A stretch of 60,784 bases of DNA, the filler included, from Dugesia japonica (lineage: Eukaryota): NCBI GenBank assembly GCA_001938525.1. It is 6 parts of 6 records of this genome, joined end to end, with 100 filler letters (N's around TTAATTAATTAA, not from the genome) between each part and the next. Parts side by side here need not be neighbours in the genome. Positions count along the whole stretch, not along the records: positions 18,265 to 27,798 come from MQRL01596823.1; 5 more parts are not named here. One strand, 5' to 3'. The notes beneath the pieces are model-generated. The model saw nothing but the letters and a program-made list of their open reading frames with translations. It was not told the origin of the DNA and did no database searches. This document shows, in pieces, positions 18,165-28,102 of the stretch; the first letter of the stretch is position 1; every line of letters begins with the position of its first letter. The position numbers and the translations under genes were made by a program.

Positions 18165-18479
18165 NNNNNNNNNNNNNNNNNNNNNNNNNNNNNNNNNNNN
18201 NNNNNNNNTTAATTAATTAANNNNNNNNNNNNNNNNNNNNNNNNNNNNNNNNNNNNNNNNNNNNATTTGTATTTTAACATACTTTATTTCTACAGTTTTA
18301 TTTACAGTATTATATATATTTAAATTTACAATTGATATGTTTGCATTTATTTTGAGCTATGGGAATTTCAATTTTTATATTTTTATTTTCTTAACTATTA
18401 CAATACGAACATTTTAAATTTGTCTTCAACAAATATTTTATTCCACATATTATAAAATTAAAAAATAAGACTTAGAATA

Positions 18480-19625
18480 AAATGTTTATGCACAAATCAA
18501 AATAGAGAAATATCAGCAAAGAGATATTTTAACACAAGAACTGATATTTTAGAAAAATTTTAAAATATTTTAGATGAATGAATAAGGGAAGCCGAAAGAG
18601 ATGAGTCTGGATTAATGTTATTAAATGTAAGCCAGATTTTGATGTTTGTATCTGAATATATTTCCTCAGTAGGTGGGTCAATTTTAAAATTACCATTTTA
18701 TAGAAATTCAATTANNNATTTAGAAAATGAGGATAATAAATCTTTCTTATGATATTTTTTAAAATTTATTGAAATAACAGGGAACATCGAATTAGAATCT
18801 TTAATAGAAAATTTATTAAATGATTATTCAATTACTCATACTATTTCATTAGATTATATTGAAAAATTATAAAAATGATAACATTAAAGCAAAAGCAGAT
18901 AAGTTAAAAACAACTAAATCAGTTGTAAGAGAAAATTTACAATGGGAAATAATTGAACATGATAAAATACTCTATACAAATTTATTTTATTATGAGCATA
19001 AAAATGTCTTTATTTATTGTAAACTGTATTTTTTTTAAATAAAAGTCAATTTAAAGCATCCCCATCTCAAAAAGCTAACAGTTTAGATTATTTAGACATT
19101 GGCCTCTAGATTTGCAAAAGGGTTCATCATAAACAATTTTGATTATTTAGGAAGATTTTTTACTATTTAATAAATTTTATTTTAAAAATAAAGTATTTGT
19201 AGTTTTAGTTGAAGATTTTGAGGTTTACATGGTTATACAATGAAATATTAATAGATAGCCCACCATAAAATATTTTCCTAAAGGATAATTATGTACAATT
19301 TAATAAATTTTATTTTAAAAATAAAGTACATGTAGTTTTAGTGGAAGATTATGAGGTTTACAATGTTTTGCAATGAAATAATAATAGATATACATTCTAT
19401 TAATAGATGATGTTAAATAAATTTTTCAAATTTAATGTCTTCAAATGTATGAAGCTGATCCAGCATATTTTTACTCAGCTCCGAGATTTACGTAGTTAGC
19501 TAGATTAAACTATAAAAATGTAAAATTAAAATATTAGATAGTAGAAACAGATAACATGTTATTATTTTTTGAAGAAGGAGTAAAATGTGGAGTCTTTGGA
19601 GAGACATTAGTAATTCCTAATAATA
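18480..19625 (+). pseudogene. Polinton/Maverick (adintovirus) protein-primed DNA polymerase B relic
   Basis: ERDESGLMLL...SVGGSILKLPF...NLENEDNKSFL* (GSSYIxLP...INxxNxDNKCFLW) and YEADPAYFYSAPRFT*...NMLLFFEEGVKCGV (LDPAHYxxAPG...FxExGIRGG); large deletions; local ~110-bp tandem duplication at 19165-19390. Confidence 0.8.
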
Positions 19626-19626
19626 T

Positions 19627-20140
19627 GTACTGGTCGATTATTCCAAGAATGTATTTTTTTCGTTCACTTGTTTCCCACATTGGCTCACATATATCAATAT
19701 CACTTCAAACAAATTGGTAGCTTGTAATCTCTTTGTCTTCTCTTTATTTGCTGTCATCACTTCTTTGATCTTCTGATAAATTTCACAATCACGAACTATC
19801 TTCTATATTTGGCTCCATAAATTCTTCGCAATGTATTTGTTTCTCATATATTCGTACACCTTTCCAAATTCTGCATGACATAAAAATTTATGTATTTCTT
19901 CTTATGTCTTTCTTTTCCTTTGTCCAAACCCAAATAAGTGGGGTATTACATAGAGAGTTGCATTTCCGGATAATGTTATTTTCAAAAAGGTTTTAAATAG
20001 GTTCTTAAATTTTATATTCTAAGTTCATTGGTTGTCTGTACGGTTTTACATTGATTGATTCACCACTTGTGATTATTTTGTGACTTGTCAGATGAGTGCA
20101 TCCTACATTACATTTATCTATCATAAAAGCATTTTTTTCG
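19627..20140 (-). mobile_element. Internally deleted Gypsy pol (RT N-terminus fused to integrase zinc domain/core start)
   Basis: GCTHLTSHKIITSGESINVKPYRQPMN; IHKFLCHAEFGKVYEY...IVRDCEIYQK; DICEPMWETSERKKYILGIIDQY. Confidence 0.85.
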
Positions 20141-21419
20141 GTTTTTTTTTCAATATATTTTTTATTTTTTTATTTATCTTTTTTGCCTGAGTAGCAGGTA
20201 GAGAATTAAAAGGTAACATAGAAATGTGTAATGAACTTGTATCGTAAAATAATTCCTTCCCAATTAAAAACGTATTCAAAATACTTAATTATTTTGATTG
20301 TGTAATAGGTTACGTAATCAATTTTTAAAAAAATTTGCAGTTATTTTTTTGTTTTCTCTACAATAACTATCGGACAGTCACAAATTTAGTATCAGTAGAC
20401 GCGCAATGTTATTCATTTAATAATTTTGTCGGACAGACCCTTCAAAAGTTATTAAATATTTAAATTAAAAACCACCGCCATTTTGAAAGATATTGACTCG
20501 AAATTTGTGGCAATCTTCTTAAAATTAAAAACTACCTATACATCACCTAAAGTACCTGTATCAAAAAATGCTTCAATTCGCCACAAAAAATATGTCAGTT
20601 GACATGTCTCACTACTAAAAGTCAAACAAATTTGGTATTCTTAAACTCAGAATTAAAAACTAAACATATTTCCCATAAGGTGTGTTGTACAAATATTCTT
20701 GGTTCTCAAAATAATATATAATTATATAATTAATTATAAATTATTATTAAAATAATAATAATTTTTAAAGTATTTTTAGACAGTAAAACTCAGAATAAAA
20801 AACTGAACATTTTGTATATAGGGTTTGCTGTAAAAAATGCTTCCTTTTAATAATTTTATTTCATGTGTTAATTGCAATTCATTGTTATTAAATTTCAAAA
20901 GTTTAAGATTTTTATTTGAAATTCATGATTTTTCGAGTAAATGTCGAATTTTAATGATTTTATAAATACAAATTTTGATTTACTTTTGAAAATAAACGTT
21001 AAATTTTTTACAAACTATTTATATTGAAAAACTGAAAAAACTGAAAATAATAATATTACATTGATAAAAAATTAAAACCATTGAAATATTGCTATAGTAA
21101 CACATGTAAAATTTTAATTTTCGAAAATGTAGAAATTTACAAAATAAAAACAAATTTAAATTACAAAACTTATTCATTTCAAATANTTTTTCTTAATAGT
21201 ACATATTTTTCTAAACATAATTAGGTTAGATTAGATTAATAGACTACAATTAAATTAAATTATTGTAATAAATTAAATACTTTACTTGAATTGACTGATT
21301 TTAGCATATACTATGACAAAATACTATCTATGGGTGGTGTTCATTGGTTTACAATTTCCACTACTTTACTATATCTACTAACTTACTGTATTCATTTGCT
21401 TACTCTAACTCTTTGTTTA

Positions 21420-22465
21420 CTGTATCACAACAAACCCTATAGGAAATATGTTTAGAATTTTATTTTGAATCGAATACTTTAACTTTCATGATCAAACAAC
21501 GAGTTTTGGCAGAGAAATTTAAAAAACAAGGTCAACAGGGCCAGTGCGCTCATACCTTTTCTTGGAGAACCAATCATATTCACATAGCAAACCCTATAAA
21601 AAAATGTTCACCTTTCAATTCTAAGAAGATCCATATAAAATTTGTTTGATTATCATAAGTATTTATAAAGTGCGATTTTTCATATTCGGTGGGTCCTGGT
21701 AACCGAGAATTTTTTATCTTTTGAACGAAGCATATTTGTACAGCAAACCCTACACAAAATATGTTCAGAATTATATTTTGAATTGAATGCTATCATTTTC
21801 AGATTTATAGGATAAGTATCGGTCGAGAAATTCATGGATCAAGGTCAACAGTGCCAGAGCACTCAAACATTTATCTTAGAAACTAAAAATATTCATGTAG
21901 CAAATAATATAAGAAATATGTTCAGATTTTAATTTTGAGTTTAAAAATACCCATTTTGTAATTTTATCATAAGTATTTCTCGAAAAAATAATTTTTCATT
22001 TTCACCTAAGAATTTTCTATCTTTTGAACTAAAAATATTTTTACAACAAACCGTACAAAAAACTTGTTTGGAATTTTATTCTGAATTGAATGCTATCATT
22101 TTCAGTGCAATACAATAAGTATTGACTGAGTAATTTATAAAACAAGGTCAATAGTACAAGTGCGCTCATACCTTTTCTCGGAGAACCAAGCATATTCATA
22201 TAGCAAACCTTATATAAAAAATGTTCACCTTTTAATTCTAAGACGATCAATACCAAATTCGAAATTACACCATAAAATTTGACCGAAAACGTTTGTTTCG
22301 AAAATTCGAATTTTCGACCTTCCTGAGCAAATATTCGGCCGTTCTAACCCGAATTCGAAATTTTTTTTCATATATTCGGAACATCCAATAAAAAAGCTAC
22401 AAATAAAAAAACATCAAAACAACCGAAACAGTCGACGGCAGGGAGGGTCGATGCCATTGCCTCAT
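21420..22465 (+). repeat. ~305-315-bp tandem-repeat family, second locus
   Basis: CAAGGTCAA at 21527, 21840, 22143; homologous to 17385-18164. Confidence 0.75.
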
Positions 22466-22479
22466 ATCTATTTACTCAG

Positions 22480-23260
22480 ATATATACTGTACATGTTGAT
22501 TATTCCAAGAATTTATTTATTCCGTCCACCTGTTTCCCGCATTGGCCCACATATATCTACCACTATTTTGTCGGACAATTTGCTTTAGTATGACCGATCT
22601 TATGACATAACCAACATTCGATATTTTGTTTTTTCTTTATTTGCTCCACATGTCTATTCATTGTTTGATTTACTGGTTTCTGATAATTTCGATTTGTAAC
22701 TCTCGCGTAACTTTTAACTGCATCAACTGGATCTTTATTTTTCTCTACTCGATCTACTAACGTCGGTGTTTCTTCAATTTCTTCTATATTTTCTTGTTTC
22801 CGCAAAGTCACTTCTTCTTTAACTTTTTTGTTATCTTAATAAAAAACTAGCATATTTGCTATCAATTATCACTCAGTAAGATATTTATTTGTAAATAATC
22901 TTTTTACTACATATTTTACATGTTTAAAATAAACTTGGATCTCTTTATTTCTACGTCTGTAGTTAATCAAATTTCGAAAATCTTTGATAACATCTTTCTC
23001 ATTCTCAAATGACATACGTAAACAAGCCTGGAAATCTCCAACTTTTTTTCTATATCTTTACATATTCTTTCAACAAATCTTCATCTAACAAACAAGAGAC
23101 TAACCTCTCCTGCTGTTTCACATAGGTAATGTTTTTAGCTTCAAAATAAAATTCACACCGCTTGATAAATTTCTGAATATCATCTCCTCTGCAGAACATT
23201 TTTAGTAATTGAATCGGTATTAACCACTTACATTTACCGGTAGATCTTTAATTGGTAATT
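22480..23260 (-). mobile_element. Gypsy gag (CCHC knuckle) joined directly to an integrase fragment
   Basis: MFCRGDDIQKFIKRCEFYFEAK; CWLCHKIGHTKANC; then VVDICGPMRETGGRNK..LGII. Confidence 0.82.
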
Positions 23261-24789
23261 CATTTTCCAAATCAAAACTAATTTTTTGAGATATCAATTA
23301 TTTTATTACTACAACTCTGCTATTTTAAAATAATTATAATTGATTGAAACTTATTACCGAATTAACTCACTTTCTATTGGCTAAAAATATTAAATAATAA
23401 TTATTTCCTTATAATGAAAAAATTCTTTATATTCTACTGCAATGATTCAAAAATTACGAACTAGAGAAATTTTTTGAAAAAATCAATGCAATCTAGAAGG
23501 TGACATTAAATTGGAAGAGAATAATCCAGAATGTGGTAAGCCAACATCATGAAAGAATTATGGATATATATAACTACTATTAGCATAGACGAAACTACAA
23601 ACTAAATCACCGAATTCAAACAGAAAAATACACAACTGCTAGATAAAATAGGAAACTAGAAAAACGTATCATAATTCTTTCGCAGACCAGCCACAAAATG
23701 ACAGATATTTTGAAGCATATGCAGATAGAAAAAAAATACTAATAACCAATGCTTGAAGTCCTTGTTAAACACCCCGTACTGTGAAGAAATAGGTCAAGAA
23801 GAGTGTTCCAGGGATCATCACCATTGATGACACTAACCATTGTTATGTAATTGTGAAATCCGATATAGTAAAATAGCTCAGGAAGTAAATAATGAAGACA
23901 GAACTGAAGACAGAAACAACGAAATTTTTGTAAGACGGGATACAGCATAGTTCTGCTGAACTCGGGAATGTTGAATCTTGATGCGGGAGAAGATATCATT
24001 CAGATTTTTTTGGTTACGGGGTATCATCCACTAGATTAAAGATAATCAGTCCAATACCATACAAGAAGAAAGAATCCTTGGGACAAAGGAGAAAAATCGA
24101 GAAGCCTCAAAACCCTACATGCATAAAAAATTAATTTAAAATTTTCTTCTTTATTTGTTAAAATTTGCTTTCCCATCTTTTCACGTTTTATTGAAACAGA
24201 TAAATCTTTATTTTTCCTTTTTTATTTGATTTCTTTAAATTTCTTTCCACTTAATTGACATTTCATTAAATGTTTCTCCATGTTCATCTAATTCTAGGTT
24301 TTTAAAATTTTTCTAATTATTTATTAAATTTACTTGTGTAAAAACATATCGATCTTCTCTGTCATGCAATACTAAATTATGAAATAATTTGCATTAAATA
24401 TTAATTTTAAAATTAAAATATTTAAATTCTCCAAACCTCTCAAGACCTTCAGTCTATGCTTAAATTTTAAGGGTTAAGGTTACAATAGCTTTAAAATAAT
24501 GTGAAAAAATTTCTAAAACCATAATGTTACGATCAATATTTATCAGGATAATTATTAATTTCAATATTTAAATCAATTGTAATTTTTTGATTTCCTTTTA
24601 TATATTCTTTACAATTTTTTTTATAAATACTTTATTTATTTGTACTAAAAATGACTAACATTGAAAAGTTAGTAAAATCATTAAAAACCTATTAGATATG
24701 TTAAATCATCTAATTCAAAATAATGAACGTTCTGAAACAAGTAAATATCGAATTGGTATAATAATTATAACCTTATTAAATATTCTATA

Positions 24790-25240
24790 GGATTACATTT
24801 CATAGAGACGTTTATTTTTNAATCCACAATCCTTTTTCGTCACTTTCGAACATCACTTAAGAATTCCAAAGTTCAAAATTGCTTTTCAAACGGTTGTTTC
24901 ATCCTGTCGTAATAATGCTACCAATAGATATTAATTACCTGATCAACTATTCTCAAAATATATTTTTTCTTGCTCGTTGTTTCTTTCGACACTCCACAAA
25001 TACTCACAATTTCTGTTGAATTACCTGGTTATATTTTCATCACTGTTTCTTTCGTTTTTTTGTGAATGTCTTCGATCTTTGGCAATTCATACAGCTCTGA
25101 ACGACCTATTTAAAAGTGTCTCGCTATAATATCGTTATGACTCAATCTTTTGTTTCCTCAATTGGTTTGGTTTATTGCAACGCACTCACTATTTCTTTTT
25201 AGTTTTCATTTATCTCTTAATTAACCGTGTTCCCTATAAT
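24790..25240 (-). mobile_element. Gypsy integrase fragment, heavily decayed
   Basis: VVQSCMNCQRSKTFT (zinc domain Cx2C); LVALLRQDETTV*KAIL...KDCG. Confidence 0.65.
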
Positions 25241-25379
25241 ATCGCATTGAAAATTTTTAACTTCTGTAAAACACAAAGTAAATGTTAAAAATAATAAAAA
25301 AATATTAGTTGAATAATCTGATAAATATCTGAACATTTAAAAAGATTAATTTTTTTTATTAATTTATAAAATTATTTAG

Positions 25380-25760
25380 ATGTTATCTGGATCGGAATTA
25401 GATAAAAAAGGACACACTTCATTGTTATACGCTAATGGACCCGGTTTCAAAGAACCGCGTTTAAATATAACCAGTGAAACCATAATTACTACAGATTATA
25501 TTTATCCCAGTGGAGTTCCTTTAACATATGAAAGCCATGGTGGTGAAGACATAACTGTTTATGCTAATGGTCCATGGGCACACCTTTTGAATGGTTTACA
25601 CCAACAGTCTTATATTGGTCATATGATGATGCATGCATCATGTGTTGGTGCTTTTAAAAATTCAAATCATTGCAACATATCTTATGTCTCAAATTATTTT
25701 TCTATAAATGTAGTATTAATTAATTTCATTATTTTATTCTTTATGAAACATTGTGTGTAG
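25380..25760 (+). CDS. Alkaline phosphatase (ALPL-like, GPI-anchored), terminal exon
   Basis: Acceptor TTTAG at 25375-25379; LLYANGPG, ESHGGEDITVYANGPWAHLLNGLHQQSYIGHMMMHASC; hydrophobic GPI-signal-like tail; upstream exons not found in the window. Confidence 0.93.
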   Translation: MLSGSELDKKGHTSLLYANGPGFKEPRLNITSETIITTDYIYPSGVPLTYESHGGEDITVYANGPWAHLLNGLHQQSYIGHMMMHASCVGAFKNSNHCNISYVSNYFSINVVLINFIILFFMKHCV

Positions 25761-25999
25761 ATTATCTAATGCACTTCTACATATAGATACTTGTCACTTT
25801 TTGAATTGATAAAAAGTAAAAAATTATTAATTTTAAAGTCTATTGTTTTTNATTCTTTNAAATAAATTAGATAGAATAAATTTAAATAACTTTTGTTTGA
25901 AAAAATTATTACGAACTAAAATAAAGGAATAAATTTAGAAATTATGAAACCATTTTACAGTGAATATATTTTAATTTGGTTTTCGTAAAATTGCTATTC

Positions 26000-27009
26000 T
26001 GTATCATAAAATTCTGATCGATTTCCTCCAGTAGCGAGTTGTAATTTTGATAGGGCTTCTCTTAATCGAAAGATTTGTTGTTGATTATTTTTCATGTTTT
26101 TAAAATCTACTGTTTTATTTGGACAGGTTTTCTGTTACCCATTTAATTCTTGTCTTTTCATCACATTGGTCTTGTTTTCCTTAGTATTTACATTAGACAG
26201 TCTTGCATTATCTATTTTGTACCGACATTGTCTTCCAGAATTGCCATGCTTCCAACAGAAGAAGCACTCTTCCTTATTTATTCGACATTCTTTGATTTAG
26301 TACCCTAGTTTATCACAATTATAAAATTTTTTCCTTGTTGATACTTGGATAGTATCATATTAGTTTTTTTGTTTCCCGGCCATATGATTCGCATCATGCG
26401 TACTCTTGATAATTTATTCCCCTGGTTTCCAATTTTTTGGTTCTGAGCTTCGTTATTGCTTCTTAAATTTTGTTTTCTGATAACCTAGTACGTTTTCTTA
26501 ATTTTCATACTGATTTGGTCCTTTCCTTATTTGGTTATCTTTAGTAAACATCTCTCTTCTGGGTGTCTTTTCATACTGTATTTGCTACAATATCTGTGCC
26601 ACAATCTATCTAAGTGATGATTCTTTTGGCCACACAAACTACAGTATGTATAGTTAACTTTACATTGGTTGGTAATGTGATGTGTTCGCTGAAAAATTTG
26701 AAATTCTATACTTATTTGTCTATTGACTGTTTCTTGGCTAGTAATTTCTTGTTCATTTACTGACTGCCTTATTCCCCATGAAGACAGAAAGTTCGCTTTA
26801 AAACTATGTTCCAAATATTTATATTTATCTTGAAAACTTCTGCTATTAACAATTTCAGGTTTACAATTATGCAGGTAAAGCGAATGATCCAAATTCATAG
26901 TCTCTGATATTGTTTTGATTACTTGCAAAATATTATGAATATTTCTATTTTCCTTAATATTTTCCTCTTTACAATCAAGTATATCAAATTTAGAATTTTC
27001 AAAAATCAT
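26000..27009 (-). mobile_element. gag-like pseudogene with four degenerate CCHC knuckles
   Basis: CSLCGQKNHHLDRL; CSKYSMKRHPEERC; FYNCDKLGY*IKEC; CFFCWKHGNSGRQC. Confidence 0.6.
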
Positions 27010-27096
27010 ATTAGAATAAATTCAAAATAAATTATTATTATTTAAAATATTTATTGCTTTAAATATTTTTTTATTAATAATTAAAGTAATAAAACA

Positions 27097-27115
27097 ATTA
27101 CTACACCATCGAACC
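27097..27115 (-). tRNA. tRNA-Val 5' portion, lying downstream of the 3' portion
   Basis: GGTTCGATGGTGTAGT; GGTTCGA pairs perfectly with TCGAACC of the 3' piece. Confidence 0.75.
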
Positions 27116-27297
27116 GTTGAACAAGTCACAATTTCTTGATTTTTATTACATATAATTTCTTAACGACTAATTTGTTAAATTCAATTAATAATTCATATAA
27201 AAATAAACAAAAATTCAATGAATAAAAATTATTATGAATAAAAATTTGTTGGAAATAATTCATTTAACATTCGTGAAATAATAAAACCACAAAAGTT

Positions 27298-27351
27298 TGG
27301 TTCGACCCGGGATCGAACCGGGGACCTTCTGCGTGTAAAGCAGNCGTAATA
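27298..27351 (-). tRNA. tRNA-Val(TAC), 3' portion (D-stem 3' side to discriminator)
   Basis: ACGnCTGCTTTACACGCAGAAGGTCCCCGGTTCGATCCCGGGTCGAACCA; anticodon TAC at 27337-27335; T-arm/B-box intact; followed by a TTTT terminator. Confidence 0.85.
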
Positions 27352-28102
27352 TTAAAAACTTATATTTAAATATAACACAAGTACAATAAATCTTTTAAAT
27401 TACACAAGATAATGGTCCAGCAAGGGACTTTTAAATAGTCTGAATGTCATCAAAAAAAGTTTTTTCTTGGCTTTTTCTTTGAATACTGGCTGTTGTATTG
27501 CATTTCTTGAATTCTAACCCTGGAATTGTTATATCTCAATTTCTGCGTTCGTTTATTTGTTGAATTTTTGTTATGAAACGTTCTTGAGACAGTGACGCAT
27601 TAATCATTTGATTCTTTGATTGTTTGTTATTGAGATTTGAGAATCACATTCTGCAATACAAAATCGAATTTCTACCTTGGTAGAATGGTAGTTAATACAC
27701 TATGCACTATTTATTCAAAGAAAGTTTTTTAACAGATGATTTTGATTAATGTTTTTATTTATTTACATATTTATATGGTAACAAGTTATTTACATATTNN
27801 NNNNNNNNNNNNNNNNNNNNNNNNNNNNNNNNNNNNNNNNNNTTAATTAATTAANNNNNNNNNNNNNNNNNNNNNNNNNNNNNNNNNNNNNNNNNNNNAT
27901 TTTATTATTTACATAGTTATCGAGTATTTACTTAGTTACCATGTATAGTCTGTATTATTTACATAGTTACGCCATTTGGAAGAATTTTTCTTTTGATTAT
28001 TGCTCTATTTTAATGGTTTAAGTAGTTTTAAAAATTCCCAGGCACGTGTTGGTGTGTTGCAATTGTGTTGCATCTGAGTTGCATGCCTATTGCATTTATT
28101 AA

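Follow-up and report, generated by a model that had tools for sequence, protein, structure and literature searches.

A split tRNA-Val(TAC) of Dugesia japonica, almost certainly an excerpt of a 255-bp tRNA gene array, lies between repeated flanks

The locus described here raises a simple question: is a tRNA-Val(TAC) of Dugesia japonica whose 3' part lies upstream of its 5' part a working gene of the permuted kind, or is it a broken piece of something else, and in the latter case, what sort of event would have put it where it is found? The window, i.e., the whole stretch of DNA analyzed, is 60,784 nucleotides long (filler included; assembly GCA_001938525.1), and the locus lies in its 9.5-kb piece at positions 18,265 to 27,798 (MQRL01596823.1), an AT-rich sequence of 18-36% GC. 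A preliminary description had placed the 3' part upstream of the 5' part on the minus strand, and direct reading gives that same order: 27351-27298, then 27115-27101. The features of the locus, with positions counted along the window, are the following.

26796 to 27096, no strand assigned: left flank (L), repeated sequence with ~5-25 times the single-copy depth
27097 to 27100, minus strand: TAAT, direct-repeat copy 1, directly after the 5' part and in place of the CGGT of the array
27101 to 27115, minus strand: tRNA-Val 5' part, tRNA positions 1-15, belonging to the next array tRNA (from sequence and contig joints)
27116 to 27297, minus strand: AT-rich array spacer, 182 nt (from T-run count and word depth)
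27298 to 27351, minus strand: tRNA-Val(TAC) 3' part, tRNA positions 20-73 (from sequence reading and an Rfam match)
27351 to 27354, minus strand: TAAT, direct-repeat copy 2, directly before the 3' part, with one T overlapping
27352 to 27798, no strand assigned: right flank (R), a dispersed, diverged repeat at ~13-50 times single-copy depth that reaches the contig end

Read along the minus strand, the 3' part (27351-27298) contains the 3' strand of the D stem, the anticodon arm (anticodon TAC), the variable loop, the T arm, and the acceptor-stem 3' strand, and ends in A73; it is directly followed by AAC and then TTTT; position 27344, in the anticodon stem, is a single unread base and was kept as N. 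The 5' part (27115-27101, minus strand) is GGTTCGATGGTGTAG and supplies the 5' strand of the acceptor stem, U8/G9, the 5' strand of the D stem, A14, and G15. It had been thought to be 16-19 nt long; it is indeed the 5' end of a tRNA, but the exact match is only 15 nt, after which TAAT stands where array copies have CGGT. The companion claim that the GG of the D loop had become AA must be given up, as the letters concerned are flank or duplication sequence (TAAT) and not a mutated D loop. The Rfam tRNA model scored 20.6 bits against 27360-27306, and this falls under the gathering score of 29, as would be expected where only about three quarters of the gene is present. ARAGORN returned no tRNA on the unmodified piece; on the two parts joined in silico, it returned a tRNA-Val(TAC) with a shortened D loop and with the perfect 7-bp acceptor stem that had been described before. 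The T tracts noted after the 3' part are likewise real: the spacer holds six runs of at least four T, the first of which begins at spacer nt 4. Pol III terminates at T-runs, and this first run is the terminator directly after the tRNA.

The origin of these pieces is found in the bulk of the genome. Contigs were built with k=31 from three Dugesia japonica DNA runs (X1, X3, and X4, from three studies) and aligned to 26400-27798 at 85% likeness or more, and the results given here are those of the best-supported alignments listed. Word depth over single-copy sequence at 26400-26493 was 18.8, 12.7, and 11.8 in the three runs, whereas in five bins over 27105-27339 it was 71,824-236,176, 59,255-170,533, and 30,914-55,647, respectively; this is ~2,600 to 13,000 times single-copy, where summed word depth is not a copy number and the fold values are to be taken as orders of magnitude only. 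For the spacer itself (27116-27297), the depth was 30,000-230,000, as against 12-19 for single-copy sequence. The preliminary description had predicted a tandem tRNA-Val array with a period of about 255 bp, and such an array exists, at thousands-fold depth and with a period of exactly 255 bp: a contig leads from 27343 back to 27101 via 12 letters, and the 243 aligned bases plus these 12 make up one head-to-tail period. A loose end in X4 continues behind 27351 with ACCGCTACACCATCGAA (plus strand) and supplies the missing D loop together with the 5' part; taken on the minus strand, the order is 5' part, CGGT, and then the 3' part as it stands at this locus. Loose ends before 27101 show, in the same manner, that other copies continue into a complete tRNA-Val. 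The array unit consists of a whole tRNA-Val of 73 nt and the 182-nt spacer, ARAGORN reads the array form as a 73-nt tRNA-Val(TAC), and the copies follow one another head to tail, each with its complete tRNA and terminator.

Some contigs run from the 5' part into an anticodon arm with AAC, and high-depth variants at 27337 and 27339 account for about half of the X1 depth; the array therefore has both Val(TAC) and Val(AAC) versions. The two versions have the same spacer, and the depth of the array is several-fold different between samples. Xenopus and zebrafish have tandem tRNA gene arrays too. The head-to-tail units with a complete tRNA and terminator resemble the arrays of Entamoeba (PMC2652664) and the human 1q23.3 tRNA repeat (PMC4041453), but the 255-bp, one-gene unit is much shorter than in either, and its thousands-fold depth is closer to that of a satellite. 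Targeted searches of the literature brought up no pertinent description of a tRNA-Val satellite. The exact 19-mer across the tRNA/spacer border occurred in five metagenome contigs, which were GC-rich chance matches of 19-23 nt where likeness ends, and 24-mers had no match in prokaryote genomes or viral contigs.

The feature at the locus is almost certainly an excerpt of this real 255-bp array. Chance origin of the short 5' piece is ruled out because it is continuous with spacer repeat at a word depth of 40,000-236,000, and because other contigs continue from it into the rest of the tRNA-Val. Compared with the array, the unit lacks only CGGT (positions 16-19, with G18 and G19); it is thus 251 of the 255 bp of one period, and both of its borders fall inside the D loop, between G15 and T20. 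Against the majority sequence of the array, the unit shows about five listed differences (three substitutions and two small deletions). At 27266, the window has A, a letter to which only 3-8 depth units correspond, T taking up essentially the whole depth of the array; at 27221-27227, the unit has three extra nucleotides relative to the array. A permuted look is of course what arises in any single array period that is cut inside the gene.

Could the locus nevertheless work as a permuted gene? On that reading, the 3' part, the intervening sequence, and the 5' part would be transcribed together, circularized at a bulge-helix-bulge (BHB), and trimmed, as happens in Cyanidioschyzon. In Cyanidioschyzon merolae, green algae, and Thermofilum, permuted tRNA genes likewise have the 3' part first and a D-loop junction (type I) at 20/21, with intervening sequences of 1-74 bp in known cases (PMC3978253), and the locus agrees with them in having its 3' half upstream of its 5' half on the same strand, a junction near 20/21, and a perfect acceptor stem. 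It departs from them in nearly everything else. The interval is 182 nt, and TTTT only 3 nt after A73, together with five further T-runs, would stop Pol III before it reached the 5' part. The best leader-trailer duplex (ViennaRNA, with the N at 27344 kept unpaired) is -2.6 kcal/mol, and 99.6% of shuffles are as stable or more so, so there is no BHB. Nor do the two halves add up to a complete tRNA, since CGGT with G18 and G19, present in array copies, is absent here, and a permuted copy is not needed because thousands of intact copies of the same gene exist in the genome. Transcript evidence comprises two partial reads in the ~6% covered of a single RNA-seq run, X13, whose library was not of the small-RNA type. 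The locus is therefore not a member of the permuted class: the idea is contradicted on four defining features, it is ruled out by the condition that the preliminary description had itself set, i.e., that a matching tandem array should exist elsewhere, and we give it virtually no chance of being right. That this copy is non-functional as a tRNA seems to us close to certain. Where it does resemble the permuted genes is in their proposed evolutionary precursor, a tandem duplicate from which the outer segments were lost (PMC3978253).

If the locus is one period of the array, the question becomes how a period cut in the D loop came to lie between L and R. Two independent cuts in 255 bp would fall as close together as these only ~4% of the time (our own calculation), which favors one event with a single breakpoint. 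We consider it an evenly balanced proposition that the tRNA pieces form the opposite ends of a single head-to-tail array period held inside a composite dispersed repeat, and the evidence for the composite comes from the flanks. The homology of L with its paralogues starts at 26796 (305 bp), with the same loose end before 26796 in X1, X3, and X4, and outside this position, the L paralogues have another sequence in common. Unique contigs of all three independent runs end at 26915, at the start of the repeat. R belongs to a family with 6-10 contig variants, and its 13-50 times single-copy depth applies to 27352-27762. Both junctions with the unit are found in paralogues: the left one is crossed by a 245-nt contig at 26886-27130 (21 differences, ~91% identity, depth 77) and, at the same breakpoint, by an X4 contig at 27015-27132 (depth 105), while left-junction variants of paralogue contigs have a depth of 159 in X3, and the paralogue left junction stands at 4-12 times single-copy; the right one is crossed by a 744-nt contig (27275-27387; 13 differences, 88% identity, depth 14). 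The copies that cross the junctions differ from the window by 9-12%, so the junctions predate the window locus or were copied from it, and since they recur in diverged copies elsewhere, they were not uniquely made here.

The unit thus probably belongs to a composite dispersed repeat, consisting of R, one period, and L with shared junctions, because its flanks are repeated and both of its junctions occur in other diverged copies. The unequal depths of L-junction and R-junction paralogues among the alignments listed (77-159 versus 14) count against such a composite. At 27083-27102, L copies carrying the junction make up 77 of 94, 159 of 191, and 105 of 123 depth units, the remainder being at single-copy level. 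X3 contains the alleles that the window itself has at 27090, 27091, and 27102 (~9 depth units, near single-copy), and the left junction of the window is therefore real in an independent sample. No direct L-R joint skipping 27097-27351, i.e., no empty site, was present among the joints listed, and the paralogues of L and of R lead on into other sequences. At 27349 or 27360, further R copies depart from the window for unrelated DNA, so the R border may mark where an independent element ends. TAAT is still carried (at the X3 loose end at 27349) by one R paralogue that has no unit, and the 4-nt TAAT repeat may therefore belong to the flank rather than being a target duplication; the same 4-mer would stand at both borders by chance about 1% of the time at the local base composition. 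That a single unit is present at this locus is given by the assembly and not by the reads, because k=31 contigs cannot bridge the 251 bp between the junctions; the unit sits 447 bp from the end of the 9.5-kb contig, and the right border of the composite lies beyond that end. What stands in the window is one diverged composite copy beside a single-copy gene, dead as a gene itself and most likely inherited by duplication or mobilization of the composite rather than made on the spot.

Several further observations concern the repeats and the sequence around them. Several single-copy R paralogues lack 160-275 bp inside 27375-27680, with joints of 27387 to 27641, 27483 to 27646, and others. One of these deletions (27388-27640) is 253 bp, close to the array period; the deleted sequence has no similarity to the array unit. 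A search of the 9.5-kb piece for extra copies of L, R, or the unit gave only low-complexity AT matches. The two flanks have no terminal inverted repeats between them (p=0.14): a 17-nt inverted repeat (16/17) at 27040-27056 and 27384-27400, which lies 41 and 33 nt outside the unit borders, is not significant in its AT-rich context (p about 0.14). No ORF of at least 55 aa was found in 27352-27798. On the other side, an alkaline phosphatase has its last coding exon at 25380-25660 (plus strand; match to Pfam PF00245 over positions 336-422 of the 423 in the profile, E=1.6e-13), and the ORF continues from there into a hydrophobic tail; its closest protein is 62% identical, and its best named relative is a bivalve protein at 40%. 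A 160-aa ORF at 26530-27009 (minus strand) starts 87 nt after the 5' tRNA piece and contains a CCHC-like motif that is broken. A word search for its relatives gave none, its Pfam zinc-ribbon matches stay below threshold, its distal half is single-copy (26635-26775), and its first 210 nt lie inside the repeated L; it is probably fortuitous and is unusable as a transposon marker. Neither this ORF nor the alkaline phosphatase exon has an entry in the gene-position index.

Farther away, at 22566-23247 (minus strand), three open stretches follow one another; a perfect CCHC zinc knuckle (CWLCHKIGHTKANC) closes one of them, and together they probably represent the decayed gag of a retroelement. A segment of 70 nt, 22488-22557, recurs at 19626-19695 (86%). 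Three direct copies of a 178-nt segment, ~310 bp apart and 71-80% identical, occupy 20629-20836 and 21427-22259, with inverted partial copies 600-1,500 bp upstream, as in a foldback or MITE-like cluster; 19149-19390 is a 109-nt tandem duplication with a 133-bp period (87% identity).

For the event that founded the composite, the simplest route would be a circle formed by recombination between neighboring repeats of the array and opened once, in the D loop; the resulting unit-length piece would have been joined into a staggered break, with CGGT lost and TAAT duplicated during the joining. A circle opened once and a staggered break fit the locus because there is one cut plus a short flanking duplication: the terminal partial repeats share one opening point and together make a whole monomer, with 251 nt present and four missing, and a source array of the same unit and period is present in three runs from three studies. 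The preliminary description had proposed excision of a circle and its reintegration, and the one-cut geometry and TAAT speak for that part of its account; the repeated flanks, the presence of the junctions in paralogues, and the lack of an empty site among the joints listed speak against its having happened here. A circle origin of the founding event is accordingly a tentative proposal, more apt to fail than to hold. Nearly as likely, though still doubtful, is the converse: an element would have inserted into the array, with L and R as the ends of this foreign element in the D loop and CGGT deleted. The contig would then show the end of one element copy, one array period, and the start of the next copy; or the two borders of an element-bounded array; or a higher-order block of element plus one period that was subsequently multiplied. 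At the junction, the R family ends in a defined way, with other copies diverging at 27349 and 27360, and for those R copies insertion of an element into the array fits at least as well as insertion of a unit. Moreover, all L copies detected at 27083-27102 have the junction, apart from the remainder at single-copy level, the same-phase borders are explained as well by a single insertion as by a circle, and copy number rises from L (5-25 times) to R (13-50 times) in what may be read as the pattern of 5'-truncated retroelements. Elements specific for tRNA genes, including tRNA-Val, do exist, namely, the Dada transposons (PMC8869645). Set against this, the supposed ends have no terminal inverted repeats (p=0.14, as above), four nucleotides of tRNA sequence were lost at the borders instead of any being duplicated, and no coding capacity was recognized, the 160-aa ORF having no relatives, although an element could extend past the contig. 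The homology of L with its paralogues also ends after 305 bp, at 26796, R copies lie beside non-tRNA sequence as well, so any specificity is not strict, and the TAAT repeat would have to be a 1% coincidence. The narrower claim that L and R are the ends of an undescribed mobile element specific for the D loop of arrayed tRNA-Val (nt 15 to 20) seems to us improbable.

Both routes are compatible with a reading that concerns the assembly, which excludes neither: a longer array of complete genes, at this locus or across two loci, may have been walked only once by the assembler, which would have dropped all complete genes and kept just the period that looks permuted. The 2,600- to 13,000-fold depth of the unit, the repeats on both sides of it, the 447 bp to the contig end, the stop of unique contigs of three independent runs at 26915, and the several paralogous copies of each junction, which offer alternative paths, are all what would be expected of such an artifact. 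However, the unit differs from the array consensus (A at 27266; three extra nucleotides at 27221-27227), which argues against a pure consensus collapse; X3 has the window's alleles at 27090, 27091, and 27102, so the left junction is real; and the borders with their same-phase geometry persist even if the sequence between them was collapsed. We judge the artifact unlikely, though not so unlikely as to be set aside. Local decay is far less probable still. It would have two neighboring tRNA-Val genes lose their 5' and 3' parts separately, with L as a degenerate further unit, and the start of L is indeed colinear with the spacer from nt 10, scoring 44 where shuffles had a mean of 27 and a maximum of 43. 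The similarity of L to the spacer is not above that of other AT-rich windows (38 versus 36), however, and we rejected L as a degenerate array unit on this borderline score. A tRNA remnant one period downstream is also absent (score 15 versus a background of 16-18), two independent cuts would come within 4 nt of the same phase with a chance of only ~4%, and the unit is about five listed sites from the array majority where the flanks are 9-12% from their paralogues.

An array period carried in a composite repeat has parallels in three known systems. Sproul et al. described new Rsp-like arrays in Drosophila in which the first repeat and the last one are truncated and together make up one monomer (PMC7403614), a pattern read as reintegration of extrachromosomal circular DNA (eccDNA). 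The Rsp-like arrays of Drosophila simulans and D. mauritiana share with this locus a source tandem array, short microhomology or duplication at the border, and a euchromatic location near a gene; here, in contrast, the monomer is a tRNA gene plus spacer, there is one period in the assembly, and the junctions are common to diverged paralogues, so the event was not local. Satellites also spread as the central repeats of non-autonomous transposons, cited as one of three euchromatic routes (PMC11610590), and the locus agrees with this in having an array unit between conserved dispersed flanks, internal length variation, and identical junctions; unlike those elements, it has no definable transposon ends, terminal repeats, hairpin-plus-CTRR end, or target duplications. 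Finally, the Dada elements, including Dada-tV in tRNA-Val (PMC8869645, PMC3706591), likewise are foreign sequence abutting a tRNA-Val gene, a member of a multicopy gene family, that is broken at a fixed internal site. They insert at nt 8-13 or in the anticodon arm and produce 6-7-bp duplications of tRNA sequence (PMC8869645), whereas the break here is at 15/20 with a 4-nt loss, neither a transposase nor a terminal inverted repeat was found, and the borders were without a Dada-type 6-7-bp tRNA duplication, the sole repeat there being the non-tRNA TAAT.

What the locus means can be said at several levels. A tempting false positive is removed, in that the locus is not a working permuted tRNA gene in an animal; the fragment is instead a natural example of the stage, tandem duplicate with its outer parts lost, that has been proposed for the birth of permuted genes. 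Were L and R the ends of an element after all, the element would be one that targets a tRNA satellite specifically, in an AT-rich, invertebrate-like genome, with an insertion site and border chemistry other than those of Dada. As it stands, the fragment is a further example of an already known satellite-fragment footprint: single periods of the array, each cut at one point, have come to lie, and been copied, in DNA next to genes, and such one-cut fragments are the footprints used to argue for circle- or transposon-mediated satellite spread. More notable than the fragment itself is its source, as the Dugesia japonica genome has a tRNA-Val gene repeat at satellite-like abundance.
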